This document shows, one piece after another, positions 1-64,000 of a stretch of DNA of 64,000 bases. Numbering within the stretch: the first letter of the stretch is position 1; every line of letters begins with the position of its first letter. The stretch spans positions 124,001 through 188,000 of the IMG/VR virus record IMGVR_UViG_3300030108_006260; one strand, written 5' to 3'. Position numbers and translations under genes: made by a program. The notes under the pieces are model-generated. The model was given only the letters and a program-made list of their open reading frames with translations. It did no database searches and had not been told where the DNA came from.

Positions 1-3000
1 GACCCCATCGTACACCAAAGTCGTAATCAATTTCCATGGGGACAATCATGTCAATACCGAATTCCTCTTTAAGGAAAGAAGGAACTTGGTCTACCATCTT
101 TTCCTGGAGAACGGATACTACCTCCTGAACCATGTCAAAGTCCATAGGAACTTCCATTGTGATAGCATCATGAACGCAGTTAATAATCTTATAGGGTCGA
201 TCATTTCTCTCTATCCAGTCCTGGATGGCCCAGGCACACAAAGCGGTAGTATCACTACTCACTGCCTGTATGGGACTGTTACGTGCTCTTCTCTTAGCTC
301 CATTCTCGTCCTGTTCAAACAGGTCTCTCAAGTGCCTAACTCTACCCATAGGAGTAGAAACGAACCCCATAGACTCAGCTTCTCGTTCGATGTCACTAAG
401 CCACTGGCCTGCTCTCTCAAATTCATTAACGAAGGTACCCTGTAGCTTTAGGGCTTCGTCGGGTGTAATGCCCAGAAGAGAAGCCAGGGTCTTAAAGTGC
501 TGACCATAGATAGATCCGAAACACAAACTCTTTGCCCTCTTACGTTCATCCCCCGTTACATCATAAACAGACTTCTGAAACATGATCGAGGCCACCTTCT
601 TATGTATATCGGCCTCTGCTTTTACTCGATTACCTAGTTCTTCGTCCCCTGTAAGTTTATATTCGTCACGAAGATTTTTCATTTCGTGGAACAACCGGGC
701 ATACTGAGTGTCACCCGCAAGCTGAGCCCACCAACGAACCTCTGCCTGACCAAAGTCGCACTCTACAAGGATATGTCCAGGCGAAGCGCCATAAATAGAC
801 CTAATAGCTGCTTTGGCGTTGTTACCCTTTCCCTTGGGGAGCTGCTGGAGGTTTGGGTCCGAAGAATTGTGCACTACAATTCCATCTACAAGGAATGACC
901 TAGTAGCAGGAACCTCTAGGTCGTACACCTTCTGTGCTCCCAACGATTCCACTCTAATGATTTCAAATGACTTCGAATTTGATTCTAACGCCCAGTGAAC
1001 AAATTCAGCGGACTCGCCGTGCTCTGGCCCAACTGCCGAAGTTACTAGGGACTGTACCTTCCTGGTGATCCTAGCCGTCTTTCTGTTTCGGGCTTTATGT
1101 AATCTATGATAATCAGGTGAGGAGCACCCTTTTCTTCCGATCAAGTTATGATGAATCTTAACAGGCTTCCAAAATGAGTCAAAGTCAAACCAGGAGGGCT
1201 TGAATACACCAAGGTGAATGGAATGCTTACGAATCTGATCTCTTTTTAGAGAGGACCAAAAAAGCCATGAAAGATCTTGGTCATTAGATACCAACACTGA
1301 GTACTTCGTACTGTTACGGTCGGGCCTCTTACTACTGGATATAGAATGGTGAATTCCCAAGCTAGAAAGGAGCAAACCTACTCCCTCTGCAAGTTGCCTG
1401 CTCTCGGTAGAAAGTCTAGGATCTCCAGATGAAGACCCCGCGTCCCCTTCAAATAGACCCTTCAAAAAGGATCGTCTCTCAGACAAACCAGAAGAGAAAA
1501 CAGATTCAGGAACTAAAGCATTCCTAGACTTGTACCCAAAACCGTTCTCGACTAGCCAACGAGATAAATCAACAGAACTACATTCCAGGGTAGGGGAACC
1601 GTTCTCGTAGTAAGAAAACTCTACCCCAAAGACTTCCTTCCACTCTGACGTGAGAAAATCTCTCAGGGGTTTTTCATCCCATCCCAGGGCAATGATAACC
1701 TTAGATGGAACCTTTCCCTTCCTGTTAGGTTCTTTCTTTGTTGGTCGTAGATTGTTGTATCCTATACACCCCTCAGCAACAAAGTGTCCGAGAAGGAATG
1801 CAACTCTGCTGTCCATAGTGGAGGGGAAGGTAGGAGTGTTGGATCGTCCTACAATAGTAGAAGGGGGTGATAGAGTAGAATGATTTGATACATCAGGTCC
1901 CTCTCTACCAGAAATGTAGAGGTCGTCACCCTCTTTCAGGTTCTGTGCCTCCGTCCACTTTCCATCTGAGAATACACGATGAAGGGGTGAACATCGGAGC
2001 TTTTTCCCGTTAGATAAAGTGAATTCAAGTATTTCTTTAGTTCCAGCTTCCCAAGCAGACTTAACTTCTTGAATCCCACGATCAGTTTGTATCAGATCCC
2101 CAGGAACTACCTTTTCAATAGGAACGAGACCAGAGTCCGTAGCTATTCTTGTTCCAGCAGGAAGACAAGCCAAGCGCCCCGTTACTGTGCGAGTAGCATG
2201 GAATCTTGCGTGTATCTTACCGTCTTGTTTGTTATCTGGTTTGGATACCAATATGTCGCTAACAGAGTCCAGGTACGAAGAGATCAGCTTATCTAGACCC
2301 GTATACTCCTTGTATAGAGAAACTACCGGATGTTTCTTGTAATGGTCAAGGTAGGCTTTATCAATCTGAGGCTCGTCCGTCTTCTTTGAAAAAGATATAG
2401 GCTCCAGTCCGCAAGCATCTACAAACAAACGAAGCTTGTGCTCCTTTTTACGGAGGGAGAAAACCCATGGCTTCTTTCCAAAAAGAGGAGTCATCCCTGC
2501 TGTCTTACTGTCCTTCTCAAGAAGGATCTCATTCGCTTTCTTGGCCTCTTCGGAAGCCTTTATTAAACCAGGTATCTCATTGTACCTTGAAATAATAGGA
2601 GAATCTTCTGACTTTAGATAGGACAACTGATCTACATCAGTAGCAAACCCATTTATGCTCATCTTCGTAAGAAGATGAAAAATACGGCTATAAAACTTTT
2701 TAGCGAAAGGAACAGCTGAAGAGTACCCCTGCCTCTCTAGCCAGAGTCGGTAGAAGTCGAAGATCCTTCTCGTGATGTAGGCGTCTGTTCCTCCGTATTC
2801 AGAAAGACGGTCGAGAGAAAGATTCCAAAGGCTACCACCAGAGGCGCCAGAACGAGCAGCAATGGCATCAGATAACTCCGTATCATATGTATAAAAACCA
2901 AGAAGCTCACGTGCCAAAGTTTTAAGTGCAAAACTGGTGAATACTGCGGACTTCTTGCCTCCGTCATCATCACCACACTGATTCTCGTCCTGTAGGTAGG

Positions 3001-19249: not shown

Positions 19250-19619
19250 TCTTCTTTTTCTATGAATGTTCCGTCATGGGAAACAAGCGGTTGGTAGTCG
19301 TCATCCAGCACATACTCAGGCGAGTGCAGGGGGTACATGGGGGGGTTGGATCGCTGGGGCTCTTTGGCCTGTTCATCGCCTCGGTCGTCACATCGATCAG
19401 GTTCTCGATGGCCTCCACAGCCGTAGCTCCTGCGGCACTCCAGTGGTAGCACATGGCATAGTAGTCGGAGCTGACGATCATGTAGATGCGTTCGGTGGGG
19501 AAGCGAATCCCCGTACGCTGCAAGACCAACGCTACGAGGTCCTGCGCCACCTCTTCAGCAACAGCGAGGTCAACTGCGGAAGCAGTGTACCCTTCTTTGA
19601 TCTGGAGATCGAACGGCAT
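19246..19619 (-). CDS. Small adhesin-associated protein with a probable -1 frameshift at a C7 run
   Basis: The start ATG overlaps the stop of the LamG gene (TGATG). Frame 0 ends at 19260. The -1 frame after CCCCCCC (19339-19345) reads MYPLHSPEYVLDDDYQPLVSHDGTFIEKED* and its stop overlaps the next ATG. Confidence 0.6.
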
Positions 19620-44887: not shown

Positions 44888-45102
44888 CGTGGTACTCCTC
44901 TTGGAGGTATGTAGTTTTCTACTGATTTAAAATCAGAAGTCTCCCCAGTTCCTAATCCTTTTTCCAGGTCATCAACGTCCTTGACTTTACGACCCTGGTT
45001 GTTTTGGGGTACTGTAAAGTTTTCTGCTTCAGGCTCTGGATGAAGCTTGGCGTCAGCGGTCATGTCTACTTTAGAGAAATCTAAAAATCTAGAGGAACTC
45101 AT
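44884..45102 (-). CDS. Hypothetical protein (72 aa)
   Basis: Coupled on both sides. Confidence 0.6.
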   Translation of the reverse strand: MSSSRFLDFSKVDMTADAKLHPEPEAENFTVPQNNQGRKVKDVDDLEKGLGTGETSDFKSVENYIPPRGVPR

Positions 45103-49988: not shown

Positions 49989-51386
49989 TTACACTACCGT
50001 TAAACTAGAGGATGACGAGTTTTGAAGCTCAGAGTGAAGCTGTACTATATAGTTAATCAGTGCAGTAAAAACTGGTATAGTTCCGGCGTAAGGGGTAGCC
50101 GAAAAACCCGAAACAGTTGCCAATTGACTAGACACTAAAGCATTCAAGGGTGTAAGAACGGAAGAAAACTCCGGGCGTAGTCTAAGAACAGGAAGTGCTC
50201 CTATGGCACCCGTAGGAGAGTCGGCACCAGGACCCATAGAGATACTGCTGCTTGCCAGAGCGATAGAAGACCCCCCAAGAACGGCAGATCCTCCTGAAGT
50301 GGCAGAGAAAGACGTGTCTGCTGTGAGCTTAATAAGGGGTGAAGATATTTCTGCTGTAACACCAGAATCTACAGAAAAAGAGTTAGAGGGTTCGGCTAGG
50401 AAATCCGTTGATTCAAAACTTACAGTGCTGTCAACGTCATAAAGGACATTCCTACCAACATTGTGTACTTCGTCTCTTCCCAGTACTATAGTAATGTCAG
50501 TCTGTTCCACGTTTATACTAAGTCCATAGGAGGAGTCACTAGGTATAGCAACAGAAACATTTCCCTCCTCGTCCACTTCTGCCACTGTGTCTTGGGAGGT
50601 AGCCGATCCCCAGCGAGTGATGCTACGAAGTTTCTTCCCTGTTACAGATGAAGTCTCCTCCTCTCCAGAGTCGGATATTACATGTCCTTCTCTATGGTCG
50701 ACTAAGGTAAAAGGAGAGGCTTTACTTTGAATGTTACGTAGATATTCCTTTGCAAATACAGAGCCTTCTGTATTTGTTGGGGTTACTTTTATAAATTTGT
50801 CTTGAGTAGAATCTGACTCGTTGAATCTCTTAACTACGCCAAAGCGTACTTCACTGCTTACTGTCCCGTAGAAATGATCTAAGGATCGTGTAATAACAGT
50901 AGGGGCCTTAGAAACTATGTCTAATCCTTCTACACTCATAACGTGAGTCAGGGGACCAGCACGTAAAGACATTGTACCTCCCTGCGCTAAGTGCTGCTCT
51001 GCTATACCAGGGCTAGCCAGTGAGATCTCCCCCTCACGTAACCTTCTGTAATAGAACTGACTGTCGTCATAAGTAGCAGTCAGCCTACTCTGAGAGGAGT
51101 TTTCTGCAAGATAGGCAGACACGTAAGGCTCCCCTCCATCCACCCGCGAGTTTACTATCATCCTAGTAGTACGCTCAGGCATGACACGTATCCAGCTATT
51201 AGGCCCCAGGTAAGGGTGAGTAATAGGTATGGTACGTCCTGACCTCGGACCGTCAAAGGTAATTTGGTCTTTCTCTGGGTTAGTGTTGACTAGAACAACG
51301 CCGTAAGGACGCGTAGCATAAGCTTCATTAGAAGCCTCACGTTGTGCATTGTGATGGAGTATTCTTGCAGCTCTTCCCGATGTCAT
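49989..51386 (-). CDS. Baseplate central spike (gp5/gpV-like)
   Basis: OB-fold-like N-terminus and repetitive beta-strand C-terminus; directly after the hub gene. Confidence 0.6.
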   Translation of the reverse strand: MTSGRAARILHHNAQREASNEAYATRPYGVVLVNTNPEKDQITFDGPRSGRTIPITHPYLGPNSWIRVMPERTTRMIVNSRVDGGEPYVSAYLAENSSQSRLTATYDDSQFYYRRLREGEISLASPGIAEQHLAQGGTMSLRAGPLTHVMSVEGLDIVSKAPTVITRSLDHFYGTVSSEVRFGVVKRFNESDSTQDKFIKVTPTNTEGSVFAKEYLRNIQSKASPFTLVDHREGHVISDSGEEETSSVTGKKLRSITRWGSATSQDTVAEVDEEGNVSVAIPSDSSYGLSINVEQTDITIVLGRDEVHNVGRNVLYDVDSTVSFESTDFLAEPSNSFSVDSGVTAEISSPLIKLTADTSFSATSGGSAVLGGSSIALASSSISMGPGADSPTGAIGALPVLRLRPEFSSVLTPLNALVSSQLATVSGFSATPYAGTIPVFTALINYIVQLHSELQNSSSSSLTVV

Positions 51387-54300
51387 CCTTCTAGTTCCGT
51401 TCTTCTTCTATAGGCAGCACGTGCTTCCGACTGACGAATTCTACGCTGGTCGTCCAAAGGCTCTCCTGGCTGGCGGGGAACCGTTCCTTCGTAACTTGAA
51501 GGAGGGCATTCATCTGGAGGAACAGCATCCCTATAAAGGGCAATTTGCTGTTGTAGGAGTGCTCTCTTTCTCTCAAGCCTCTCCAGCTTCCTTTCGTTGG
51601 ACGAAGTTATCTGTCGTTGCTGTCTCAAAATACGCTGAGACTGTCTCTCCGTGGCATTACTAGGGAGTTCAGGAATAGGATCTAAGGTCAGTCCTGACGG
51701 AGTTTCTGCCTGAGTTACCGTGGGTATTCCTTTAAGTAAGAAATCTTCAAAATACTGCCTCTGGGTTACAAGAGAACCTTTAGAGCTTCCTCCCCTAAGT
51801 TCAGCACCGGCAAACGGATCGTCCTCTACACAAGAAGGGCTGTAGAACAAGAAGGCACGTGGTACTTGGTATCCTTGTGACGAAGATCTTAAGAAAGAGA
51901 GGGAAAATCTCCTAGCTAGGTCCGGAGATATGTGACCTATCGAGTTCCTAGCATTTCCTATTCCTGATACACATCGTGTGCTTGCAAGAACTTTACCTGA
52001 AGGAAGTTGTGACAATAGCTGGGATCTCTCGGACGTTCCTTCATCTATAGATAGGGATGAATCATTTGATATGAGAGCCTGACGGGCAGACACAGCGAAG
52101 AATCTCTTGGTAGCATTCTGCGCTCCCACATAGCGAGAATACGCTTCTGACCCTGCTATGGCGGCACACTCAAAGTGTAGGTGTGCCCGTGCGATTGAGG
52201 TAGCCTCACGCCCTGGCATTCCTATCTTAGCAATAGACTGGTTTCTCTTTACCTCATCTCCTATAGAAACCGAGACATCTTTAAGATGTCGGTAAAACGT
52301 AGCGTATCCAGCCTTGTGAAGTATACCTACGCTCTGCCCTTTACCGGAGTCGTCCACTATATTTATTACGATTCCGTCAGCAACAGAGTACACAAAGTCC
52401 CCCAAAGTAGCAGGAAGGTCGACACCAGGGTGCCAGCTATTCCTTCCCCTTCTTCCAAAAGAGCTTGTGACAATACGGGGAAAAGCACCCCTGGTCTGGA
52501 ATATTCCTACGGAGGAGCTTATACCATCAAGGGGGTCACTTATGTCTCCTCTCGCGTACCTGATAAGAAAGTCAGACCTTCTTCTTCTTGTGAGGTTCAA
52601 ATCACGGTCAATAGCATTAAACCAATCAGCAAACTTTGGAACAACAGACAGAGACTGCCTTCCTAGAGGGTGACTAAACATGTTAGGGTCACCAGGAAAA
52701 CAGGGCTCATCTTCGGAAGGAGGAGAAGCCGGGGTACGGTCAACTTCCTCGTGGTCTTCTAGAGTAGATCTTACACCAGACCTTCCTCTATCAGGGTTTG
52801 TTCCCTCAGGACCCTGTGTAGGATTGATAGTACTAGACCTATCTGATATCTGAGATCTAGCGTCCTCCACTAGACGAGCACACTCTTCTAACTGCTCATT
52901 GATCTCTTCCTGGGAGAAGGAGCCAGAGTTAAGTGCTATTTCCGTACAGAACTCCTGGGCACGCTGTAGGGTTGAAATTACCTCGTCCTCTGCTCCTTCG
53001 GGGAGATCAGACTGGGACCATATAGCAGCGCTAACAACGTTATAAGAGGACTGTCCTTGTGGAAGGATTGCGTTATACTGGTCCCGTAGCTGTGAGAGGT
53101 CCGCCTGGGTTATTGGAGAGTTAGAATCACGTAAAGAGCTTATGGCGTCAGAGAAGGTGCTTATACGACGAGATAGACTAGTTAAAATATCAGCTGCCCC
53201 TCCTCTCCTCTCACCAAAAAACATAGGCTGAGAGGGTCCTCCCGTGATGAACCTGGGTATCCCGAGTTCGTCTATGCTTCTAGTGTAGTTGAGTGTTATG
53301 GAATAATCCGGAACAGTAGAGCCTGCTACTGACCCCGAGGTAACGGGTAAGGACCACCTGATACTATCGATTAGTGCATACCTCTCCCGGTATGCATTAA
53401 AGATCGGTTTGTTTAACAGCAACCACGGACGAAACGCCAGGCTTATCTGATAGTTGTCAGCAGCAGCCAAGAGCTTCTGAAACTCAAGCATTGCTAGCTT
53501 CTCAAGCCTAATTATAGATGTAATCTGGAAATAATTTCTTACCTGAACCTTGATCCCGTGCCGGGAAGCAAGACTAGGACTCCACACGCCCACAGTCTTA
53601 GCAGGATTGTAGTTTCTTAATTCCGTTCCCTCCGATACGTCGGCTCTACCCACGAAAGATCCATTAGCAACAACAGCAGTAGTTATTTCGTTTCCTTCTT
53701 CATCAAAGGATTCACTAAGGAGGTGATGGTCTAAAGTAAGAACCTCTTTGTAGGGCCCATAGTCCCGTGGATCAAAGTCATACTGAGCAAACTCAAATAT
53801 CAAATCACCAGTTCCAGAAACCCAGAACCTGTAGTCTACCTTGTCACATGCGTCACTTATCATGTGAAGTCGGTTAGTCCAGTTCAGGTTAGTAGCGGCA
53901 TTTGACTGTGAAATTAGGCCAAGCTCGTCTATAAGACCTAGAGTAGGTGATTGACGAGAGGGATAGATCATGTTTACTGTCTGAGCGTCTACCGCCCACA
54001 AACCTTCCCTTCTTGTCTCAACACCGGCAGCGTGGACCTCGTCCTCACTCCAGTATCGACGAAGTGATGGACTCTGGTCTAGTTGTCCGTCACGCACAGA
54101 CAGAGGACGAGTTAAGGAAGAAGTACCTACTAAGTCAGTACCCCCGAACTCTTGACTGGACACATTTATCCTCTTTGGAGATCCAAACAGGCATAGGTTA
54201 TACCAGTCCTCCCACCACTCGGTTATGGCAGAGGATCCTTCTTCTGCCCTAGGGTAGATGGCACCAGAAACAGCGTAGGGGGGTCGAGTTTCTCCTTCAA

Positions 54301-55870
54301 TTGAAGGTCTTCCCCACGGATATACCCCAGGACGCATCCTACCAATTCTTCCGGCGCCCCTAGATGATGTCGAAGTCAAAGGACGAGATTGTACAGGAGT
54401 CCCTTCGGTACCAGGAGGAGACTCAGGATTCTGGTCCGAACGAACCTGGTCCAGTTGAGAGTCGATAGGTCTAGATACAGAGGAGTCTTGCTCGGAAGGG
54501 TCTCCAGAGGAAACCCCAGTGTCCTCAATCTCAGACAGGAGGCTGTTGTACCTATCTCTATCAGAGTCGGACAGTCTTCCTCTTCTCTCCAGTTTTCTTC
54601 TCAAAAAATGAAGCTCTGAGGCGGCGCTCCTTGAATTTCTTCTTCTTTCTGCGACTATTCTTCTCTCAACTGTTGTTCCTGCACGAGCAACTAAACCTTG
54701 AGCGTTGTCTATGAAGGTAAGTGCAGCAATCATCTCCCTAAACTTAAGGGCAACCCAGGGGTTGGTATAGTTGTTACTAACTACAAGGTCCTGAAAAAAA
54801 GATCTGCTGAATTCTACGTTTGATTGCTCTCTGAATATCTGCAACCCTCTGAACGGCGTAGTATTAGTAGGGTCAGCCGCAGCAGTAGCTTGCTGGCCTG
54901 GAAGAACAGCCAGAACTGTGTTAGTGTTAACACGCATGCTGTGCATTATGTGCCGTATATCACTGCACGACACAGAGACTATATTTTCTCCTGTGATGTA
55001 GTTCTCTGAAGTCGGCTTGTTTACTATCAGACCGGTAAACACGGGTAGCCACTCATCTGAATCAGAAGCAGGGTTGTGTATCCACACCCTAACGTGGTCT
55101 TGTTTATGGAAAATACTAGACCAATAGTGCAAAGGAAATCGACGTCCCCCCGACTGAGGGTCTACAGGGTTAGATCCTGGGTTCTTCTTTCTGTCGTATA
55201 TTTCCTTCTTAGCTGTCTCATCGTAGTCGATATGTGCTCCGCGAGATCTGGAAGAAGATGCTACAGTACGGAACTGATCCAGTTGTATGTTCTCTGGAGT
55301 AAGAGTAAACTTGTGACCTGAGTTGTCCAGCCGTAGATCACATTTATTAGGGGAAGACCCAAGGCCATACGTAACAGATATTGAGCCTATAAGGTAGTCA
55401 CTTACGTCCTGGCCCTCAATGTACACTATTGCATCATGGTAAAATACCTGATGTGGTTGCTCTTTAAAGTAGTGAGGAGGGTTTACTGGAGAGGGAAAAG
55501 CTTCTCTCTCAGGTGTAGCGTCTCCTGATCTCCTTGGATCCGGGTCTTCCTGTCTGTATAACGAAGAACTTCCTGTACCAACGGCGTCTGGGTCTACTCT
55601 AGGGTCTGGGGACCTTCCCTGGTTTCCCTGTCCCGACCTCTCTCCCCTGATTATTCTAAGAGCCTGCTCCTCGGCGGACCTTCGTCTTTGAGAAGGGCTT
55701 TGGCCCCCTGCAAGAGGAACATCGTCAACAGAAGGATCTGGAGAAGGAACTCCGTCCGTAGAAGCCAAAGAAGCAGAAGAATACGAACTCAGGTTGTCAA
55801 GAACATCCTGACCTGAAGGTACTAACCTCTCAGCCTGGTCCCCGCGTATCTCTTTGTCGTCTTCGGCCAT
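51383..55870 (-). CDS. Baseplate hub (gp27/gpD-like) fused to an M23 peptidoglycan peptidase
   Basis: IVYIEGQDVS, C.LRLDN, VFTGLIV, DYRFWVSGTGDLIF hub motifs. M23 motifs WHPGVDL and AHLHFE at about 52170-52470. Confidence 0.8.
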   Translation of the reverse strand: MAEDDKEIRGDQAERLVPSGQDVLDNLSSYSSASLASTDGVPSPDPSVDDVPLAGGQSPSQRRRSAEEQALRIIRGERSGQGNQGRSPDPRVDPDAVGTGSSSLYRQEDPDPRRSGDATPEREAFPSPVNPPHYFKEQPHQVFYHDAIVYIEGQDVSDYLIGSISVTYGLGSSPNKCDLRLDNSGHKFTLTPENIQLDQFRTVASSSRSRGAHIDYDETAKKEIYDRKKNPGSNPVDPQSGGRRFPLHYWSSIFHKQDHVRVWIHNPASDSDEWLPVFTGLIVNKPTSENYITGENIVSVSCSDIRHIMHSMRVNTNTVLAVLPGQQATAAADPTNTTPFRGLQIFREQSNVEFSRSFFQDLVVSNNYTNPWVALKFREMIAALTFIDNAQGLVARAGTTVERRIVAERRRNSRSAASELHFLRRKLERRGRLSDSDRDRYNSLLSEIEDTGVSSGDPSEQDSSVSRPIDSQLDQVRSDQNPESPPGTEGTPVQSRPLTSTSSRGAGRIGRMRPGVYPWGRPSIEGETRPPYAVSGAIYPRAEEGSSAITEWWEDWYNLCLFGSPKRINVSSQEFGGTDLVGTSSLTRPLSVRDGQLDQSPSLRRYWSEDEVHAAGVETRREGLWAVDAQTVNMIYPSRQSPTLGLIDELGLISQSNAATNLNWTNRLHMISDACDKVDYRFWVSGTGDLIFEFAQYDFDPRDYGPYKEVLTLDHHLLSESFDEEGNEITTAVVANGSFVGRADVSEGTELRNYNPAKTVGVWSPSLASRHGIKVQVRNYFQITSIIRLEKLAMLEFQKLLAAADNYQISLAFRPWLLLNKPIFNAYRERYALIDSIRWSLPVTSGSVAGSTVPDYSITLNYTRSIDELGIPRFITGGPSQPMFFGERRGGAADILTSLSRRISTFSDAISSLRDSNSPITQADLSQLRDQYNAILPQGQSSYNVVSAAIWSQSDLPEGAEDEVISTLQRAQEFCTEIALNSGSFSQEEINEQLEECARLVEDARSQISDRSSTINPTQGPEGTNPDRGRSGVRSTLEDHEEVDRTPASPPSEDEPCFPGDPNMFSHPLGRQSLSVVPKFADWFNAIDRDLNLTRRRRSDFLIRYARGDISDPLDGISSSVGIFQTRGAFPRIVTSSFGRRGRNSWHPGVDLPATLGDFVYSVADGIVINIVDDSGKGQSVGILHKAGYATFYRHLKDVSVSIGDEVKRNQSIAKIGMPGREATSIARAHLHFECAAIAGSEAYSRYVGAQNATKRFFAVSARQALISNDSSLSIDEGTSERSQLLSQLPSGKVLASTRCVSGIGNARNSIGHISPDLARRFSLSFLRSSSQGYQVPRAFLFYSPSCVEDDPFAGAELRGGSSKGSLVTQRQYFEDFLLKGIPTVTQAETPSGLTLDPIPELPSNATERQSQRILRQQRQITSSNERKLERLERKRALLQQQIALYRDAVPPDECPPSSYEGTVPRQPGEPLDDQRRIRQSEARAAYRRRTELEG

Positions 55871-55925: not shown

Positions 55926-56441
55926 CTAAGAGGAAGCAGAGTCTTCTTTACTGTGTAATAAATCTATAATTCTGGGTAGATCGTACGGACGACAAGAGTA
56001 CCTAGTATGGTATGAGTCCCAAGGATTTATAAACGAAGTGTTTAGTACACCAATGGAAGGTATTCCCATAAACCCGGCGTAGGTTACTTCAGAAGACGAG
56101 AAGCTTTGCCCAAATTCTGAAATAACTACGTCAGATCTGCAAAGAATCCATAAATCCATTAGCACTGTATTTTCAGTAGAAGGGTCACTATCCCTAGACG
56201 TCATTATATCCTCAAAAGATGAAGACATAACAGCATCAAAAAGACGTGATACATAAGTTCCCTCGAAAAGAGGAGCTGCTTTTTCTAGGCGTAGTGAAGG
56301 GTCCCTACCGGAAACAGAAGAGGACAGTGAGGGTGAAACAGACCCTGACGATGCATAAAAAGTGTAGTCACCCAAAACGCTAGACCAAGAGTGGGGTCTA
56401 CTCATGGGGTTTCTTGCCAAATAAATAAGAGGTGAAGTCAT
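55926..56441 (-). CDS. Nucleoside 2-deoxyribosyltransferase-like protein
   Basis: IYLA..., DLWILCRSDVVISE...SSEVTYA..GIP.IGV...NPW. Confidence 0.6.
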   Translation of the reverse strand: MTSPLIYLARNPMSRPHSWSSVLGDYTFYASSGSVSPSLSSSVSGRDPSLRLEKAAPLFEGTYVSRLFDAVMSSSFEDIMTSRDSDPSTENTVLMDLWILCRSDVVISEFGQSFSSSEVTYAGFMGIPSIGVLNTSFINPWDSYHTRYSCRPYDLPRIIDLLHSKEDSASS

Positions 56442-57606: not shown

Positions 57607-57866
57607 AGAATCATAACCTGAACGTTAGGGGAGTTGATTGACCCTATAGAGTGAGAGACTGATTTTCTTATACATAGCCATGTTTCATTTTTCATAAGTA
57701 AATCACTCTCACCATAGTGAGCCTTTACAATAGGAGAAAACCACCGAATCAAATCATCTACTTTACCTTTGTATATGGAGGCATCTCCGTCGTCCCTCAC
57801 AATAAGAAGGACGTGTTTTCCTTGAGACAAAGCTTTCCATATAATGTTGTATGCGTCGTCAGACAT
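57603..57866 (-). CDS. Hypothetical protein (87 aa)
   Basis: Coupled ORF. Confidence 0.6.
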   Translation of the reverse strand: MSDDAYNIIWKALSQGKHVLLIVRDDGDASIYKGKVDDLIRWFSPIVKAHYGESDLLMKNETWLCIRKSVSHSIGSINSPNVQVMIL

Positions 57867-58893
57867 CTTGGAACGAAAGTAGTAAAGATTCTATTTCTTC
57901 TAGTGCCATATCCATAACAGTACCTTCAGCACCCTGCTGTTTAACTCCATCGATAAGTAGCTGCTTAAGTGATCCGCTCATATCGAGGCTCAGTGAGCTT
58001 AGTGTCTTTTTGACCTCATACTTCACTACGTTTGTAGGAATATCCTCGGAAACCAAATCAGACTTACTGTCTAAAACTAACTTTACGTAAGCGTTTGAAG
58101 GAACACTGTCACCTATTTTAGCTTTGACTAACTGGTTAGTATCAATAGGTATAAACTCAGGGGAGTCGGGGAAGTCAGTATCTACCAGTAGCACACCCTT
58201 AGGCCAATCACTGTCAAATCTAGTCTGGAGAGGACTACCTGGATAATAAGCACACGGACCTACCCTCTGCATCTTATGGATGTCACCTAGGGCCCAGTAT
58301 GTTACATCAAGAGACGGGTCAGGAGGAGACTCTCCCGTATCCATACGATAGTAATCTCCGGTAGAAAGCTTTATCTCTGTCTGAGAGCCACGAATAGTTT
58401 CGTGCGCAACCATAACGAAGTTTTTTGCCCCAGTAGCTATGCTAGACTCATGGAAATCTATAACTGCTTTCCTAGATTCCTCAGGAAAGCATCCCTTATT
58501 GTGAAATAGTAAACAAAAGACAGTGTCATCTATCTGGTGATAAGTAGTACTGTCAACTATTACGGAGTTGGACAACCTCTCATGCTTGCACAACATACTA
58601 AGGTAGTTAAGAGCAGTATAGCCGCTGTGGTCTACCAGATCATGATTGCCAGGAATAACCAGTATGTTGTACCCAGCAGCGTCATAATCAAGTATTTTAC
58701 GCTCTACAAGGTCCCTCTCTTCAGGGGAAGGGTCAGAAACATCAAAAATGTCTCCAGCAATGACCACAGTATTAACTCCTGCGTCTGCTGCTGTATCAAA
58801 AATCTGATCTAGGGCCTCCTCTTGTCTTTCGAGGAAGTTAGGCAAAAACCTAGACCCTCCTATGTGGAGGTCGCCTGTGTGTATGAACTTCAT
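57859..58893 (-). CDS. sbcD: SbcD/Mre11/gp47-like metallophosphoesterase nuclease
   Basis: IHTGDLHIG, IAGDIFD, IPGNHD, VAHET, ALGDIH, YPGSPLQ. Confidence 0.9.
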   Translation of the reverse strand: MKFIHTGDLHIGGSRFLPNFLERQEEALDQIFDTAADAGVNTVVIAGDIFDVSDPSPEERDLVERKILDYDAAGYNILVIPGNHDLVDHSGYTALNYLSMLCKHERLSNSVIVDSTTYHQIDDTVFCLLFHNKGCFPEESRKAVIDFHESSIATGAKNFVMVAHETIRGSQTEIKLSTGDYYRMDTGESPPDPSLDVTYWALGDIHKMQRVGPCAYYPGSPLQTRFDSDWPKGVLLVDTDFPDSPEFIPIDTNQLVKAKIGDSVPSNAYVKLVLDSKSDLVSEDIPTNVVKYEVKKTLSSLSLDMSGSLKQLLIDGVKQQGAEGTVMDMALEEIESLLLSFQDV

Positions 58894-59535
58894 TTATATA
58901 TTAGCTATTATTCTTTCATCCCGAAGATAGTTCAGTATGAGGGCCGACGCCTCTTCTCTTTTTATAAAAGATCTCTGCGTTCGGTCCCCATGTACATGGT
59001 AGCGACCCTCCCTAGACATCCACAGTCTGATATGACTAATACCTACCCTTTCAGTAGATAGTTGTTCTTTAAAGTGAACGAGAACAACAGGGTGTCTCTT
59101 ACATATTAGTACTAGACCAAACCAAGAAGCTACGCCCTCTTCTACCTTAAGACCTTTCTGGTTTATCACTACGAATATACTCTTGCTCTGAATTGCAGCA
59201 AGAACACGGTCATAGGCATGTTCGTCTATGGGTACCACACCTATAGCATCCCCTAAAAATCTGGCTAGTGGAAGAACATACCTGTGCTCCGCCGATAGTA
59301 TCTCTGTAGGGTGAGAAGGGTATGCATCCTGGGGACGGTAAGAGAAAGAGGGCTTCGAGTCTAGACCTATAATGTTAGGGTCGTCATTACCCATTTTAAT
59401 GGGTTTACCGTCAAAACCATACAAAGTAGTTTTGTCTGTCTTAGAAGAGGGGTCGGATCCCATGTACCCCTGGTCTACCATATCAGATGTAACTGAAGGA
59501 GTGCCAGAAAAATCAGGTCTTGTTTTTTCAGTCAT
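58894..59535 (-). CDS. Hypothetical protein (213 aa)
   Basis: Abuts the SbcD start. Confidence 0.65.
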   Translation of the reverse strand: MTEKTRPDFSGTPSVTSDMVDQGYMGSDPSSKTDKTTLYGFDGKPIKMGNDDPNIIGLDSKPSFSYRPQDAYPSHPTEILSAEHRYVLPLARFLGDAIGVVPIDEHAYDRVLAAIQSKSIFVVINQKGLKVEEGVASWFGLVLICKRHPVVLVHFKEQLSTERVGISHIRLWMSREGRYHVHGDRTQRSFIKREEASALILNYLRDERIIANI

Positions 59536-59999
59536 GATAGGCTCATTGAATCTAAGTATGATCTTAGAATTTTTCTAGCGGATTTAAGAGTCCTACACCT
59601 GGAAGTTATAAGCTCTCCGTCTATTTTTAGTGTTACACCAGAAACCCTGGTTCCCTTTGAATCATAGGTAGAACGTAAAGACCCTACCTGATCCCCACAA
59701 ACAAAAATAGTTAGTGGAGCCCACGTACAATAAAGCGAAGAACCCTTAGTTCTAGATTCAAAGTCTGTATATCCGAAGACCATGTAAGATGTTTTACAAA
59801 GGGTAGCTTCCTCTACAGAATCAATATCTTCCTGTAGGTATAGCTTCCAGCCAGAGTCCTTGCTCAAAGCAACAGCAGAAGACCACAATGAAGACTGAAA
59901 TCTTCTAACGTGGACCCCACAACGAGTGGCTCCAAAGTCAATAACACCAGGATTGTCTTCCAAAAAGACAAGGACTTCTGAGGGACAAAAAGAACTCAT
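59532..59999 (-). CDS. Hypothetical protein (155 aa)
   Basis: Coupled ORF. Confidence 0.6.
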   Translation of the reverse strand: MSSFCPSEVLVFLEDNPGVIDFGATRCGVHVRRFQSSLWSSAVALSKDSGWKLYLQEDIDSVEEATLCKTSYMVFGYTDFESRTKGSSLYCTWAPLTIFVCGDQVGSLRSTYDSKGTRVSGVTLKIDGELITSRCRTLKSARKILRSYLDSMSLS

Positions 60000-60002
60000 G
60001 TT

Positions 60003-61313
60003 CTACACAGCAGTTACTTCTTTTGCTTTAGTCTTTCTTTTACGCTTAGGGGTGCGATCACTACCCTCATTATCGCTTTCTTCCTCGTCAGAGGAAGAAG
60101 AGGAGTAATCTTTAGAAAAAGAGGAGTCACTAAACTGCTCGAATATGTTTTCCTCATCCTCTGACGCCTCAAGGTCTACCTCATCGTACAGAGATGCCCA
60201 GTCGTTTGCCTTAAAGAACAAGTCAAAAGCTTTACCTGAAATAAGCTGGCTCCTGCACAGCTCACGAAACTCATTTGTGGCAAATAAAGGAAGTATGTCC
60301 TTCTCATAGTGGTTTTTATTGTTCCATTCAAACTCACCAGGAACATCAAGAGATAGAGATCTATATTTTCCTGCCCTTACGAACTGACCAGTCATCTCAA
60401 GATATCCCTTTGTGTCTCGAACCCTCTCAAATCCACGACCAAAAGCTACACAAAGAGTGTCCTTTATATCCAAGAATGGAACAAATTGTTTATTCTTCTT
60501 GGTAGAGATATTGATGAACCGCATTGAACGTCTTCTTTCTTCAAAGACCTTTCCTACAGCACTCATTCTAACCTGAAGATCGGGATAAAACCCTACAGCC
60601 TGTCCTCCCGGCTGGTACTCAGGGTTTCCGAATAACTGACCAGGGTTTAGGCGTAGCTGATTTGTAGCAAACCAGCTAACGTTTTTTCTTCCAAGCTTGG
60701 TCTTGATAAGCGGCATATACTGAGAATGAACCGAAGCGCTTACGGCACGTCTACCATCAGTATCATCTATCTCATATGCCTCTGGCAACATAGCTGCCAA
60801 ACTATCAACAATGAATAGTGCCTGAGGCTTAGGTCTCGATCCGTCCTCATTAGGGTCGTAGTCAGGTAGAGCCCTCAAAAGCCTAGCCATCATTCGATAG
60901 GATGCCTCCCCCGTAGTGGGCTGGAAATAGTTAAAGTACGGGTTCTTTTTACCGTCGTTTGTTCTTATGCGAACACCTATGCTTCGCAGGTACTTAGAGT
61001 CAGCACTTGCTTCATGATCAAAGACAAAAACAGGTACTTTCTCTTCTAAAGCTGATGCGATCAAATGGTAGCTCAAGGTGCTTTTTGCGGATCCCTGAGG
61101 TCCATAAGCAACAGTGAACTTACCCGGAGGAAGACCTCCTCCGGTAATAAGATCCATTATCAAAGATCCCATGGACAATGATCCAGCAACAAAGGATCCA
61201 CGGTCCAAGTTAACAGGGGGATTGTCAAGACCGGGCCCCAGCCTTTCTGCTAAAGCAGCTAGCTCTATGGGGTCACTTACGAACTCTTGTTCTGGTTTTT
61301 TCTTTTTAGCCAT
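60003..61313 (-). CDS. recA: RecA/UvsX recombinase
   Basis: MDLITGGGLPPGK, Walker A YGPQGSAKST, DHE, Walker B FIVDSLAAM, TNQLR, GGQAVGFY. Confidence 0.93.
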   Translation of the reverse strand: MAKKKKPEQEFVSDPIELAALAERLGPGLDNPPVNLDRGSFVAGSLSMGSLIMDLITGGGLPPGKFTVAYGPQGSAKSTLSYHLIASALEEKVPVFVFDHEASADSKYLRSIGVRIRTNDGKKNPYFNYFQPTTGEASYRMMARLLRALPDYDPNEDGSRPKPQALFIVDSLAAMLPEAYEIDDTDGRRAVSASVHSQYMPLIKTKLGRKNVSWFATNQLRLNPGQLFGNPEYQPGGQAVGFYPDLQVRMSAVGKVFEERRRSMRFINISTKKNKQFVPFLDIKDTLCVAFGRGFERVRDTKGYLEMTGQFVRAGKYRSLSLDVPGEFEWNNKNHYEKDILPLFATNEFRELCRSQLISGKAFDLFFKANDWASLYDEVDLEASEDEENIFEQFSDSSFSKDYSSSSSDEEESDNEGSDRTPKRKRKTKAKEVTAV

Positions 61314-61314
61314 C

Positions 61315-63027
61315 TTATGATTCTTTTACACTTTCAGAAGGAAGTATTCGGCCCCTACTGTCGAAGCTAACGTCACAGGACCATTTGTTAGAAGGAGAAT
61401 ATGCTCTGGGGTAAGGGTCAACCCAAACCCTAAGTGGTTCATTTGAGGGAGACTTAAATGATGGCCGGAGAAAAGAAGATCTTATCTTTTTCAGGTAAGG
61501 GGAAAACATAGAAAACAAGTAAGAAGAGAAATCCACGTACGATAGTTCTCCAAGAAGTACCCTATCCAACTCCTCTTCTATCTCTGCATGAAAATCAGGG
61601 TCTATAAAATCAGGAAACACCTGTCTAAGAAATGTAACACATGCCTCTCCTTTAGGAGTTATTTGTATCAATCCTCTGGACATGGTCACCATGTCAAACT
61701 CTACTAGGGAATCTAATATAATAGAAACGTTGGACGGCCTTAGAATAAGGGAAGAGTCTAAGAAACCTACGACGTCAGATAGGGACGTACCAAACTTATA
61801 AGGAGTCTTAGTGTGTAGAGAAGACTCTAATATTCCCGTCTCTTCACAAGAAACAGGTATACTAGGTGAGCTAAACAAGAAGCTGCTTACCTTGTGCCAC
61901 CCCGGCTTTACAAGCTCAGTGCTAGTAGCCTCCACAATTAGGTCGCTACCTTCTAAAGGTCTATAGGTACAGATGTTTGTCTGAGTAATACTGGTGACCG
62001 ACTGAGACGCGAGGGCCCTAAACCATATGGAAGCGTATACGGTTCTGAGGTCACCCTTTATGCCTGAGGAAGAAGGAGTGATGGAAGGGTCTAAGGGAAA
62101 TAATCCAAAGTATCTATCGGATGCATCTCCTATGAAGTCAGCACCAGCGGTTTTGGTTATGAAAGACACTCCCTTATCAAAGGACTGAATGGACGTTTCT
62201 TTTGTTTCAAAGTCAGAGTTACCTACCAACTTACGTGTCATGAGAGACTCTAACAGACCTGCACTATATGAAGGAGAAAATCCGTACCTTGATGAAAGGA
62301 ACGAGCATAGAGAAACTAGCCCAAAGCAGGAGGGAGGATCCTCTGCACTCTTTACTTCTTGGTACTCAGGTGTACATGAGGACAATAATTCCATGGCTCT
62401 CTCTGCCTTATCCCTATCAGGGATAGGAGTAGATTCGGCCAAAGCGCCACTCTCAAGCAAAGAGGATATCTGATAGTCCACCGTAGACCTTGATAGTCTG
62501 GTGTTCTTGGCTAAGATAGAAAGAACTACACCGCTGTGTCTTTCCAGGGCAACAGTGCCTATCCTGGAGGAGACTTCTTTAGAGGTCACAACAGAGGATA
62601 GATTCTCAACAAGACGACAAGACAGATAGTATGAAACCAAGGAGGTAGAGACGTCTATATTCTCATAAGAGAGACCAGAAGAAAGGTCTCCCAATTTTAT
62701 TCTGTAGAAGGACGCACCACACTTGTTAGCCATAGATTCTACCCTAGAACTTATGAACTCTCCTAGGGGAGACCTATAAAAAGCTGAGTAGACTTTATCC
62801 CCTTCCGAGAAGGCGGAGGATAATCTAGAAAAAACACTAGAGTTAAGTATGCCTATCTTGGGCAGGAAGGATTTATCCTCTATTTTAAATGGCATTCCAT
62901 CAGAATGTAATCCCTCAAAAACACCATCTGTAGATAAAACAGACCATGAAGAAGGGTCCTCAAAGCGATCTATACAAGAGACTATTAAAGATGCTCTGGA
63001 GATGTTCTCTACTACTATGTAGTTCAC
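61315..63027 (-). CDS. topA: Type IA topoisomerase homologue lacking catalytic residues
   Basis: Colinear TopA motifs: YIVVEN, KVYSA...GEFIS, YASIWFRALASQ, LRPS, ITPKG...FPDFIDPDFHAEIEEELD. The DxDxE triad and the catalytic Tyr-x-Arg are absent. GTG start. Confidence 0.8.
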   Translation of the reverse strand: MNYIVVENISRASLIVSCIDRFEDPSSWSVLSTDGVFEGLHSDGMPFKIEDKSFLPKIGILNSSVFSRLSSAFSEGDKVYSAFYRSPLGEFISSRVESMANKCGASFYRIKLGDLSSGLSYENIDVSTSLVSYYLSCRLVENLSSVVTSKEVSSRIGTVALERHSGVVLSILAKNTRLSRSTVDYQISSLLESGALAESTPIPDRDKAERAMELLSSCTPEYQEVKSAEDPPSCFGLVSLCSFLSSRYGFSPSYSAGLLESLMTRKLVGNSDFETKETSIQSFDKGVSFITKTAGADFIGDASDRYFGLFPLDPSITPSSSGIKGDLRTVYASIWFRALASQSVTSITQTNICTYRPLEGSDLIVEATSTELVKPGWHKVSSFLFSSPSIPVSCEETGILESSLHTKTPYKFGTSLSDVVGFLDSSLILRPSNVSIILDSLVEFDMVTMSRGLIQITPKGEACVTFLRQVFPDFIDPDFHAEIEEELDRVLLGELSYVDFSSYLFSMFSPYLKKIRSSFLRPSFKSPSNEPLRVWVDPYPRAYSPSNKWSCDVSFDSRGRILPSESVKES

Positions 63028-63341
63028 GATACCTCCATAAGAGCCGATTCTGCAATCGAGGACGTAAGAATACCTTCTGACTTGAACTGTAGGTGACCTC
63101 CCCTAAATATACGTAGCTGGGGTACACGGACGCAACTAGTCTCTGGCAAACTGGATCCAAGCTCACTTGCTTCAGTAGACGCTACTAAATATCCAAGACC
63201 TGAAAATCTAGATTCGAACAAACTAAGAAGTGACAAAGACCTAGAACTCATAGAGTCGCCTGGTGTTACTAGTAGTAAAACTAAGGGTGTTTTAAGTCTA
63301 ACCAGAGCTGACGCTGAATCGTAAGTTAATTTGGTGATCAT
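63024..63341 (-). CDS. Thioredoxin-fold protein without CxxC
   Basis: PLVLLLVTPGDSMS at the WCGPC position; cis-Pro loop VPQLRIFRGG...EG; 105 aa. Confidence 0.65.
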   Translation of the reverse strand: MITKLTYDSASALVRLKTPLVLLLVTPGDSMSSRSLSLLSLFESRFSGLGYLVASTEASELGSSLPETSCVRVPQLRIFRGGHLQFKSEGILTSSIAESALMEVS

Positions 63342-63397: not shown

Positions 63398-64000
63398 TTA
63401 CAAATCGTCAAAGTCATCGAAGTCATCGTCGAAGTCGTCATCCATGTCGTCGACGGGAGGACTCTTTTTCTTTGTCTTCTTGGGAGGAGTATCCTCCTCA
63501 TCATCGTCGTCGAAGTCGTCGAAGTCATCATCGTCGTCTTCTTCTACAGGTTCGACCTTTTTAGGCTTTCGCCTCTTAGGTGAAGGAGGAACATCCTCTT
63601 CATCGTCCTCGTCGTCATCGTCCTCGTCGTCATCCTCTGGTTCAGGTTCAGGCTTTTTAGCCTTTCTCTTCTTCTTGGGGGATTTTTTAGCAGGAACGTC
63701 GTCGTCGTCATCATCATCTTCGTCATCAACAGAAACAGATGCCTTCTTCTTACTTGGAAGAACTACCGAAGAGTCAGGGCCCCCAGAAGAGTCCTCTCCT
63801 TCGAAGTAACCGTGGCGACGCAAATCCATTCTAATTTTATCAAGGTCAGGCTCCAGCCAGTACTCGCTGAAGTCAACTACCTCTAGGGACAGTTCGCTCT
63901 CATCAAGAGGAGCCCTATCACCCTTCTGTACTTGCCACTCGATCCCACCTCTCTTTTTAGAGTTCTGCTTCATAAGATGAATGTCGCATCCATTTTTCTT
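63398..64000 (-). CDS. gp32-like single-stranded DNA-binding protein, C-terminal part (5' end outside the window)
   Basis: The frame is open to the window edge (KKNGCDIHLMKQN...WQV...APL.E.EL...DF). Long acidic/basic tail ending DDFDDDFDDFDDL; upstream of the RecA module. Confidence 0.65.
   Translation of the reverse strand, partial: KKNGCDIHLMKQNSKKRGGIEWQVQKGDRAPLDESELSLEVVDFSEYWLEPDLDKIRMDLRRHGYFEGEDSSGGPDSSVVLPSKKKASVSVDDEDDDDDDDVPAKKSPKKKRKAKKPEPEPEDDDEDDDDEDDEEDVPPSPKRRKPKKVEPVEEDDDDDFDDFDDDDEEDTPPKKTKKKSPPVDDMDDDFDDDFDDFDDL

Follow-up and report, generated by a model that had tools for sequence, protein, structure and literature searches.

Type IA topoisomerases and related systems

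Type IA topoisomerases are universal enzymes built as a four-domain toroid, and the paradigms for comparison here are bacterial topoisomerase I (TopA) in the form of the E. coli 67-kDa core and the full-length T. maritima enzyme. The chemistry of the family relies on a catalytic Tyr (E. coli Y319, in the motif ITYxRT), an Arg two residues further on (R321), TOPRIM acidic residues (E9 and the Mg2+-binding D-x-D-x-E triad D111, D113 and E115) and an active-site His (H365, in HEAIRP). Mutants in which the Arg is replaced, namely E. coli TopA R321W, human TOP3A R364W and TOP3B R338W, are self-trapping but keep the rest of the active site and cleave DNA (PMC10079683). In comparison, non-catalytic derivatives of type IA topoisomerases are essentially undescribed, and full-text literature searches found no report of one in phages. 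A precedent for a non-redox use of another enzyme fold is thioredoxin, which serves as a processivity subunit of T7 DNA polymerase.

Here we describe a full-length topoisomerase IA look-alike from an uncultured marine jumbo phage, located next to recA in a 64,000-nt stretch of DNA (positions 124,001 to 188,000 of IMG/VR record IMGVR_UViG_3300030108_006260, hereafter the window). The gene was first noticed in a sequence-only reading as an intact but catalytically dead TopA-like ORF situated between SSB and RecA, and this observation is confirmed by our analysis. The protein has lost the residues needed to cut DNA, except for the Glu matching E. coli E9, and seven related lineages keep the gene intact next to recA.

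A topoisomerase IA homologue in a recombination module

The 570-aa ORF begins with a GTG codon that overlaps the TGA stop of the gene upstream (the reverse complement of 63024-63027 reads GTGA), and its stop codon is separated from the recA ATG by a 1-nt spacer. Both junctions are thus as claimed in the sequence-only reading. The features of the locus are collected in Table 1.

Table 1. Features of the topoisomerase-like gene and its neighbours (window positions; all on the minus strand)
Position	Feature	Remarks
61315..63027	Pseudo-topoisomerase IA, 570 aa	GTG start at 63027, stop codon 61315-61317; predicted full D1-D4 toroid plus one C-terminal ribbon-like domain
62653..63027	TOPRIM-like domain D1, residues 1-125	E7 (equivalent to E. 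coli E9) kept; no Pfam Toprim (PF01751) hit
62764..62778	Degenerate metal-binding triad, residues 84-88	Y-R-S-P-L in place of D-x-D-x-E
62203..62232	Former active-site loop, residues 266-275 (KLVGNSDFET)	N270 replaces the Tyr, D272 the Arg; residues 273-277 are the only stretch of the model with pLDDT below 50
62110..62112	Codon of Y306	Position of the active-site His (HEAIRP aligns with YFGLFP); this Tyr is not conserved in relatives
61318..61467	C-terminal domain, residues 521-570	Zinc-ribbon-like fold (predicted) with the zinc cysteines gone; clade-specific conserved motifs LRPxFxSP, W549 and FDxxG; part of the window protein most similar to its relatives (41% identity)
63024..63341	Thioredoxin-fold protein (predicted), 105 aa	No CxxC motif; stop overlaps the start of the topo-like gene; immediately upstream in every clade locus
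63398..64000	C-terminal part of gp32-like SSB	Long acidic tail; gene starts beyond the window end; full 344-aa form is L001:4596-5630
60003..61313	RecA/UvsX-type recombinase, 436 aa	Starts 1 nt after the stop of the topo-like gene
58894..59999	Two conserved genes of unknown function, 155 aa and 213 aa	Same order in all related loci
57859..58893	SbcD/gp47-like nuclease subunit (Metallophos)	Conserved member of the same module

Homology to type IA topoisomerases is far above chance. The Pfam model Topoisom_bac (PF01131) matches residues 196-500 with E 1.7e-16 and 60.7 bits against a cut-off of 35.1, and a profile of the clade described below, searched against PDB, finds T. maritima TopA over the full length with E 8.8e-66. 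However, the protein falls far below the equivalog cut-off of the NCBIfam topA model TIGR01051 (46.9 against 456.4 bits). The AlphaFold model (AF2) has a pLDDT of 90.4 and a pTM of 0.87, and although it is a prediction whose input alignment contained canonical enzymes, it superposes end to end on E. coli, S. mutans and T. maritima TopA (Z 26-28). With VIA the best comparisons reach Z 28.3 and 27.5, over model residues 1 to between 517 and 570, with residues 1..570 aligned to E. coli TopA 3..695, while Foldseek gives E of about 1e-30 and TM scores of 0.72-0.76. The predicted architecture is therefore the four-domain toroid (D1 TOPRIM, D2 arch, D3, D4) plus one C-terminal ribbon.

The SSB gene lies two genes upstream, and its full-length form, read in L001, matches phrog_15004 with E 1.2e-21. 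For the intervening 105-aa protein, a profile search against PDB gives E 6e-4 to 3gnj, the AF2 model has a pLDDT of 87.9, and Foldseek gives a TM of 0.81, and of 0.77 to E. coli thioredoxin as bound to T7 DNA polymerase (1t7p). At the site of the redox-active CxxC motif this protein has SMSS, four relatives have a single Cys (LCxR), and one (from locus L008) has none, so any role would be structural. In contrast to the T7 system the thioredoxin fold is here phage-encoded, its partner is presumed, and this partner would be a topoisomerase fold rather than a polymerase. ESM Atlas look-ups for the two genes that follow recA gave nothing usable, and a promoter and terminator scan gave no signal above chance inside the module.

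Dismantling of the active site

Residue equivalences were examined on MAFFT alignments of 18 and 62 sequences and rest on these sequence alignments alone. The canonical TDPDREGE aligns with FYRSPLGE, such that the acidic triad becomes Y84/S86/L88; ITY(M/H)RT aligns with VGNSDF, such that the Tyr becomes N270 and the Arg D272; and HEAIRP aligns with YFGLFP, such that the His becomes Y306. N270 occupies a column that is Tyr in 94 % of 54 canonical relatives, and there is no Tyr between residues 255 and 305. These substitutions of the triad, Tyr and Arg had been correctly noted in the sequence-only reading, but two points require correction. First, GRVQ had been matched to GTVA, whereas SAGRVQS in fact aligns with ALERHSG, meaning that the Arg (R163) is kept, as it also is in four relatives, while the Gly, Val and Gln are lost. 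Second, the Glu equivalent to E. coli E9 is retained (E7, in VVEN).

Apart from E7 and R163, the protein shares with TopA the Arg-Pro of GRPSTYA, the motif YxxIWxRxxxSQ and the ExxLD helix. Overall it keeps 33 of the 74 columns that are at least 80 % conserved in 54 canonical relatives, and the six other clade members in that alignment keep 29-51. In the C-terminal domain the canonical zinc-binding Cys columns are S526, S544 and C551 and clade members have almost no Cys there, even though the match at the level of the fold extends to E. coli residue 695. Moreover, the window protein is acidic (pI 5.04, net charge -15) whereas canonical relatives have a pI of 8.3-9.8, and it is rich in Ser (17.9 %).

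An alternative view is that the protein is still a DNA-cleaving or strand-passage enzyme with a relocated active site. Candidates are the R247-Y248 pair in domain III (motif SRYG), which is invariant in all 8 clade members including the two without the canonical Tyr and is rare in canonical enzymes, or Y306 at the former His position, in either case together with E7. However, all three metal ligands of the triad are gone in the window protein, Y306 is not conserved in any relative, the active-site loop is the only low-confidence part of the model, and no type IA enzyme with a relocated nucleophile is known to us. A remaining cleavage or strand-passage activity is thus very unlikely on present evidence.

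A clade of degenerate topoisomerases in large phages

Word-indexed protein searches with the single sequence and with the clade profile returned only the query or ordinary bacterial TopA, but an exhaustive HMMER scan recovered a family of relatives. In the resulting tree the window protein belongs to a monophyletic clade of eight lineages (support 99/99) from 340-424 kb phage contigs, of which it is the most degenerate member and in which it is sister to another Tyr-less protein, P0009. A metagenome locus scan with a 5-sequence alignment added only fragments. Among GenBank phages there is no relative of the gene, no similar DNA and no RecA above 30 % identity, and no cultured relative or host is known.

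The whole clade, and not just this gene, had already lost part of its active site, a point missed in the sequence-only reading. The position of R321 is occupied by Y, F or M in all seven other clade members, the His is lost in all seven clade members aligned, the second Asp (D113) is lost in 7 of 8, and the Tyr is lost in the window protein and P0009. The six Tyr-retaining relatives therefore resemble the self-trapping mutants in carrying an aromatic or hydrophobic residue at the Arg position but, in contrast to these mutants, they also lack the His and part of the metal site, so that cleavage by them is unproven.

The nearest sequence relatives outside the clade are active-looking phage enzymes from metagenomes (P0017, P0018, P0019, P0023 and others). 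They are of similar length with a single C-terminal ribbon, keep all canonical motifs and the CxxC zinc ribbon, and are basic (pI 9-9.8) except for P0017 (pI 6.8). One of them, P0018 (TDADREGE, SYCRT, HEALRP, SAGRVQS, CPTC), lies in a TopoIA-MTase-102aa-RecA-x-x-SbcD locus, an arrangement of the same module that had likewise been overlooked, and the semi-degenerate P0020 is also near RecA.

Gene order is identical in all clade lineages: after the gp32-like SSB it comprises the Trx-like protein of about 100 aa, the topo-like gene, an optional DUF3467-like gene, RecA, proteins of about 160 aa and about 210 aa, SbcD and, further on, an M23 protein. The junction between the Trx-like and topo-like genes is a 1-4 nt overlap or a 1-nt gap in every lineage. 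The tight coupling is thus to the Trx-like gene, while the 1-nt junction with recA is particular to this phage, since relatives have 21-86 nt gaps or an inserted small gene. An HMM search suggested that the Trx-like partner occurs only with degenerate forms; however, an hhalign comparison revealed a weak possible homologue upstream of the active-looking P0019 (E 0.003, probability 10 %), and it can only be said that no clear Trx-like partner sits directly upstream of the sister enzymes.

Evolutionary rate and constraint

Homologue conservation, synteny and dN/dS had been proposed beforehand as a means to distinguish a repurposed protein from simple decay. Within the population only 2 synonymous and 1-2 non-synonymous differences exist, too few for a dN/dS estimate, and between clade members synonymous sites are saturated. 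Identities were therefore compared with those of neighbouring genes. Between genomes whose neighbours could also be compared, the topo-like gene shows 24-38 % pairwise identity (up to 46 % across all clade pairs), against 56-75 % for RecA, 51-69 % for SbcD and 61-69 % for SSB. The gene thus evolves about twice as fast as its neighbours.

The fast rate, the Ser-rich composition and the uninformative population data could suggest a neutral remnant that is open only by chance. This explanation is close to refuted. Eight lineages at 24-46 % identity all keep, in the same place, an intact ORF of about 570-587 aa with conserved ends, a conserved hydrophobic core and clade-specific invariant motifs, the model is confident, and identical copies occur in several independent ocean samples. 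By our own calculation the chance of 570 stop-free codons at this base composition is about 1e-14. Moreover, domain II is conserved at 30-35 % in the clade against 16-20 % in canonical enzymes, and the clade-specific invariant motifs are SRYG, PGWHQLSxxLF (in the arch) and LRPxFxSP...FDxKG (in the C-terminal domain).

Fast evolution would, however, fit an arms race as well as relaxed constraint, and conflict proteins often evolve faster than neighbouring genes. In the arms-race view the protein is an anti-defence or host-takeover factor without a role in phage recombination itself, a topoisomerase-shaped decoy or dominant-negative protein that titrates host partners of TopA/TopB (RNA polymerase, SSB, RecQ-type helicases) or defence sensors. 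The long terminal branch of the window lineage (1.79), the acidic charge and the location of the conserved surface motifs away from the catalytic cleft speak for such a role. On the other hand, the position inside a tightly packed SSB-RecA-SbcD module is conserved across all lineages, an active ancestor-like enzyme sits in the same place, and PADLOC gave no match to defence or anti-defence models. This possibility remains unlikely.

A putative accessory subunit of the recombination machinery

The explanation we favour, with a probability of roughly 0.55, is that the gene encodes a pseudo-enzyme, a complete topoisomerase IA toroid predicted to be unable to cut or pass DNA strands. In this view it descends from an active phage topoisomerase IA that already sat beside RecA and SbcD in a recombination/replication module, and its catalytic apparatus was dismantled stepwise, with the loss of the Arg and His, of the second Asp in all but one member and of almost all zinc cysteines, followed in this phage and one close relative by the additional loss of the Tyr. 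The protein is nevertheless kept by selection, constraint having moved from the catalytic cleft to the arch and the Cys-less C-terminal ribbon. Most likely it works as a non-catalytic structural subunit of the phage recombination machinery, probably made in fixed ratio with, and bound to, the redox-dead thioredoxin-fold protein translated just before it. It would hold or recognise ssDNA or branched DNA, and/or dock partner proteins such as the SSB acidic tail or RecA/UvsX.

The predicted fold, the missing residues, the conservation, the synteny, the translational coupling and the rate pattern are established by the analysis, while the lack of catalysis, the complex with the Trx-like protein, the binding of DNA or partners and the role in recombination are inferred; no experiment or interaction prediction supports a complex with the Trx-like protein, SSB or RecA. 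Strong DNA binding in particular is doubtful, given the acidic charge and the degraded ssDNA-groove motifs (SAGRVQS, GRPSTYA), of which only R163 and R430 remain. The interpretation offered in the sequence-only reading, a repurposed toroid acting for example as an ssDNA clamp, recombination mediator, D-loop-binding cofactor of RecA or decoy, is thus supported only in part: a full-length fold without the cleavage chemistry, the absence of decay and the conserved link with SSB, RecA and a thioredoxin fold all hold, but none of the proposed activities is shown.

A more speculative and rather improbable possibility is that the clade represents a natural series of “disarmed” type IA topoisomerases with a function no topoisomerase is known to have. 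The Tyr-retaining members carry Tyr-Pro-Tyr/Phe in place of Tyr-x-Arg and have an incomplete metal site, the signature of engineered self-trapping mutants, and could cleave once and stay covalently attached to a DNA end or nick, thereby marking or capping recombination intermediates. The Tyr-less window protein would do the same job non-covalently, as a toroidal clamp together with a dedicated redox-dead thioredoxin subunit. This would be a new class of RecA/UvsX accessory factor in jumbo phages.

Whatever its precise role, this case provides a graded natural series of active-looking sisters, Arg/His-less but Tyr-retaining relatives and two fully Tyr-less forms, all at one conserved position next to RecA/UvsX, SSB and SbcD in very large phage genomes. 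It thereby makes directly testable what the topoisomerase IA toroid can do for recombination apart from strand passage, and how jumbo phages organise recombination-dependent replication without a recognisable UvsY-type mediator. The obligatory pairing with a Cys-poor thioredoxin fold adds a second pseudo-enzyme to the same puzzle.

Sequence and gene organization

The topo-like gene is an uninterrupted ORF whose GTG start codon overlaps the TGA stop of the upstream 105-aa gene and whose stop codon is separated by a single nucleotide from the ATG of the following gene. The start is well placed, since the N-terminus (V-N-Y-I-V-V-E-N) aligns from residue 1-2 with the M-K-L-L-V-V-E-S of homologues. 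Eleven genes from the SSB down to position 55926 are packed with overlaps or gaps of 0-8 nt, apart from the 56-nt gap that follows the SSB gene, and promoter-like and terminator-like signals are not above chance. The gp32-like SSB carries an acidic (Asp/Glu-rich) tail of about 150 residues, interrupted by Lys-rich patches (pI 4.46, net charge -37); because its gene runs off the window end, the ORF list shows only an internal 191-aa piece. A tail and baseplate module directly follows the recombination module, while an SNF2-type helicase lies at the other end. No second topoisomerase was seen among the 28 larger window ORFs scanned against Pfam. Elsewhere in the window, a segment with a GC content of 0.58, against about 0.45 in the rest of the window, lies inside an ORF which, like its 1237-aa neighbour, has no PHROG match.

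Coordinates of the features discussed (L-numbers designate loci read from other genomes or contigs)
Feature	Sequence	Position	Strand	Remarks
Topo-like gene	window	61315..63027	minus	570 codons, GTG start
Stop codon of the topo-like gene	window	61315-61317	minus	
Overlap of start codon and upstream stop	window	63024-63027	minus	reverse complement reads GTGA
ATG of the next gene	window	61313		
Topo-like and Trx-like genes together	window	61315-63341		
recA	window	60003-61313		
gp32-like SSB	window	63398-64000		runs off the window end
gp32-like SSB	L001	4596-5630		
Protein with M23 peptidase domain	window	51383-55870		1495 aa, tail and baseplate module
Baseplate_J	window	45099-46499		tail and baseplate module
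SNF2-type helicase	window	4397-8467		1356 aa
GC-rich segment	window	20001-24000		inside the ORF of the next line
ORF without PHROG match	window	19619-23269		1216 aa
DUF3467-like gene	L002	6020-6388		
DUF3467-like gene	L003	2325-2678		
DUF3467-like gene	L007	4113-4451		
DUF3467-like gene	L008	2229-2561		
RecA gene with LAGLIDADG intein	L021	6550-8913		sister lineage
RecA gene with LAGLIDADG intein	L022	6996-10898		sister lineage
Gene with LAGLIDADG intein	L002	333-3026		897 aa, two genes upstream of the Trx-like gene
ORF upstream of the Topo IA P0019	L024	337-654		105 aa
P0020, partly degenerate Topo IA	L022	4125-5849		

Homology and predicted fold

The protein is a real type IA topoisomerase homologue. 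The Pfam Topoisom_bac model scores E 1.7e-16, above the gathering threshold, although no Toprim model matches. On its own, the sequence reaches TopA structures only weakly and only in its C-terminal half, but a profile built from the protein and its six nearest relatives hits T. maritima Topo I at E 8.8e-66 over positions 2-521. An AlphaFold2 model based on a 62-sequence alignment has a mean pLDDT of 90.4 and a pTM of 0.87, the only stretch below pLDDT 50 being residues 273-277, which belong to the former active-site loop. It should be kept in mind that the alignment used for modelling contained canonical enzymes. With this model, Foldseek finds full-length Topo I at E about 1e-30 and TM 0.72-0.76. 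Superposition with VIA-align, a check that the sequence-only reading had proposed, gives Z 28.3 for the S. mutans core and 27.5 for the E. coli 67 kDa protein; model residues 1..570 align with E. coli TopA 3..695, which covers the toroid plus the first C-terminal ribbon.

Loss of the catalytic residues

Two MAFFT alignments (18 and 62 sequences) and a column table of 74 positions conserved at 80 % or more in 54 canonical relatives provide the residue equivalences listed below. The window protein retains 33 of the 74 columns. There is no Tyr between residues 255 and 305, and the zinc-ribbon cysteine columns are occupied by S526, S544 and C551.

Equivalence of canonical type IA motifs and the window protein
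Canonical motif	Window sequence	Consequence
VESPxK	VENISR	The Glu equivalent to E. coli E9 is kept as E7
TDPDREGE	FYRSPLGE	D111, D113, E115 become Y84, S86, L88
ITY(M/H)RT	VGNSDF	Tyr becomes N270, Arg becomes D272
HEAIRP	YFGLFP	His becomes Y306
SAGRVQS	ALERHSG	Arg kept as R163; Gly, Val and Gln lost
GRPSTYA	LRPSNVS	Arg-Pro kept

The sequence-only reading had described a full-length Topo IA without its key chemistry, and this observation holds. Its equivalences of D-D-E to Y-S-L and of GLITYMRTDS to KLVGNSDFET are right, whereas the proposed match of GRVQ to GTVA is off by a few residues and the surviving Glu had been overlooked. On the alignments alone, a relocated active site (R247-Y248, or Y306) cannot be excluded, but it is unlikely because all metal ligands are gone.

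A clade of degenerate relatives

The window protein is not alone. An exhaustive HMMER scan of 1.84 billion representatives found 229 relatives, the nearest of which (P0008, P0009, P0010, P0011, P0014 and P0016) are full-length proteins of 572-587 aa at 20-35 % identity. An eighth lineage, L015, was found in IMG/VR, and canonical-looking enzymes come further down the list. In a maximum-likelihood tree the eight form a clade with 99/99 support, in which the window protein is sister to P0009 (92/77), then P0008, and has a long terminal branch of 1.79, compared to 0.47-0.71 for those two.

Within this clade the Arg after the Tyr and the His are absent in every member checked. The Gln of GRVQS, the Thr of GRPSTY and the Thr of FTAxME are absent in all seven members of the column table, nearly all zinc cysteines are gone, and the second Asp is absent in all but P0010. 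The Tyr itself is kept in six members (TYPY, TYPF, SYPF, SYPM) and lost in two, the window protein (N) and P0009 (A). The catalytic machinery was therefore already dismantled in the ancestor of the clade, and the Tyr proved dispensable at least once, which argues that whatever selection preserves does not need strand cleavage. The Tyr-retaining relatives carry an aromatic (or, in the case of SYPM, hydrophobic) residue where engineered R-to-W mutants of E. coli TopA, TOP3A and TOP3B become self-trapping (PMC10079683), which suggests a covalent-capping function, although this is speculative.

Conserved genomic setting

Contigs carrying the relatives are 340-424 kb where long enough, and every locus shows the same order: the gp32-like SSB (phrog_15004, E 1e-19 to 1e-21), a protein of about 100-114 aa, the topo-like gene, in four lineages only a DUF3467-like gene of about 110-122 aa, RecA/UvsX, a gene of about 160 aa, a gene of about 210 aa, an SbcD-like nuclease, three or four small genes and finally a protein of about 1,470-1,495 aa with an M23 peptidase domain. 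The DUF3467 match ranges from E 0.0013 to 3.6e-6 and is above the Pfam cut-off in three of the four relatives (L002, L003, L007 and L008); the gene overlaps the end of the topo-like gene and is absent from the window and from L004, L013 and L015. The junction between the 100-aa gene and the topo-like gene is a 1-nt or 4-nt overlap in seven lineages and a 1-nt gap in one, while the junction with recA is tight only in this phage.

The small upstream protein is predicted to adopt a thioredoxin fold. A profile search against PDB gives E 6e-4, the AlphaFold2 model has a pLDDT of 87.9, and Foldseek gives a TM of 0.81 to a thioredoxin-related protein and of 0.77 to E. coli thioredoxin, including the copy bound to T7 DNA polymerase. 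However, it has no CxxC motif: the window's Trx-like protein has SMSS at that site and most relatives have a single Cys. An HMM of this protein finds it directly upstream in all clade loci and not in the sister loci. Nevertheless, hhalign shows a weak possible relative (E 0.003, probability 10 %) in a 105-aa ORF upstream of the active-looking Topo IA P0019 (VRFPRLLIYRQG against VRVPQLRLFxxG). The partnership may therefore predate the loss of catalysis.

Origin

The active-looking sister P0018 keeps TDADREGE, SYCRT, HEALRP, SAGRVQS and a CPTC ribbon. It lies on a 126-kb contig in the order Topo IA, methyltransferase, 102-aa gene, RecA (with intein), 199-aa gene, 144-aa gene, SbcD and clamp loader. 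A second, independent and partly degenerate Topo IA lineage, P0020 (TYPDYRGD, SYPIT, GIFPVD; basic, pI 9.6), has an overlapping 87-aa upstream gene and also lies two genes from an intein-bearing RecA. LAGLIDADG inteins interrupt the RecA genes of two sister lineages, as well as an 897-aa gene in the clade locus L002. The Topo IA-RecA-SbcD linkage is thus older than the pseudo-enzyme, which arose in place. In bacteria, type IA topoisomerases cooperate with RecA or SSB.

Selection and where it acts

Population variants of the topo-like gene from other ocean samples differ by only 2 synonymous and 1-2 non-synonymous codons, which is uninformative. In recA, by contrast, all 21 codons changed with respect to the population variants L010 and L011 (19 synonymous, 2 non-synonymous) fall within codons 113-199 and the rest of the gene is identical, which looks like a short recombination or gene-conversion tract between related phages.

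Between lineages whose neighbouring genes could also be compared, the topo-like protein is 24-38 % identical (up to 46 % across all clade pairs) and the Trx-like protein 25-48 %, compared to 56-75 % for RecA, 51-69 % for SbcD and 61-69 % for SSB. The gene therefore evolves about twice as fast as its neighbours. It nevertheless stays open over about 570-587 codons in eight lineages, whereas the chance of a 570-codon frame without a stop at this base composition is estimated at about 1e-14, and it is still predicted to fold with confidence. Neutral decay is effectively excluded.

Domain-wise mean pairwise identity indicates where constraint sits. The arch (domain II) is conserved at 30-35 % in the clade compared to 16-20 % in canonical enzymes, while the ssDNA-groove segment (D4a) shows the opposite trend, with 31 % in the clade and 42 % in canonical enzymes. 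The part of the window protein most like its relatives is the C-terminal ribbon, at 41 % against 23-30 % elsewhere. Clade-specific invariant motifs are SRYG (R247-Y248), PGWHQLSxxLF in the arch and LRPxFxSP...W...FDxKG at the C-terminus.

The topo-like and Trx-like proteins of the window are unusually Ser-rich (17.9 % and 19.0 %), compared to about 9 % for RecA and SbcD in the same operon. Charge has also shifted. The window protein has a pI of 5.04 and a net charge of -15, clade members have a pI of 5.8-8.6 and most canonical relatives 8.3-9.8. The acidic charge and the degraded groove make a simple ssDNA clamp less convincing than the sequence-only reading supposed, and together with the fast evolution they keep an anti-defence or decoy role alive, if only as an unlikely alternative. 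The functional interpretation offered by that reading is supported only in part.

Interpretation and significance

It is firmly supported that the gene encodes a full-length, selected Topo IA derivative lacking key catalytic residues, that it belongs to a clade-wide series of such derivatives, and that it is embedded in a recombination module and coupled to a protein with a predicted thioredoxin fold lacking the redox motif. That the protein is catalytically disabled is inferred from the missing residues. It is likewise an inference, albeit the most likely one, that it is a structural accessory subunit of the module, which would act through its arch and C-terminal surfaces on DNA intermediates or partner proteins.

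Full-text searches for inactive type IA topoisomerases in phages found nothing relevant, and a comparative survey of 224 jumbo phages discusses only type II-like and type IB-like phage topoisomerases (PMC7824862). Viral structure libraries hold few Topo IA models, mostly from giant viruses, and no cultured relative is known. Type IA topoisomerases are universal enzymes; what is new here is a pseudo-enzyme lineage of such an enzyme, with a conserved partner and a conserved genomic context.
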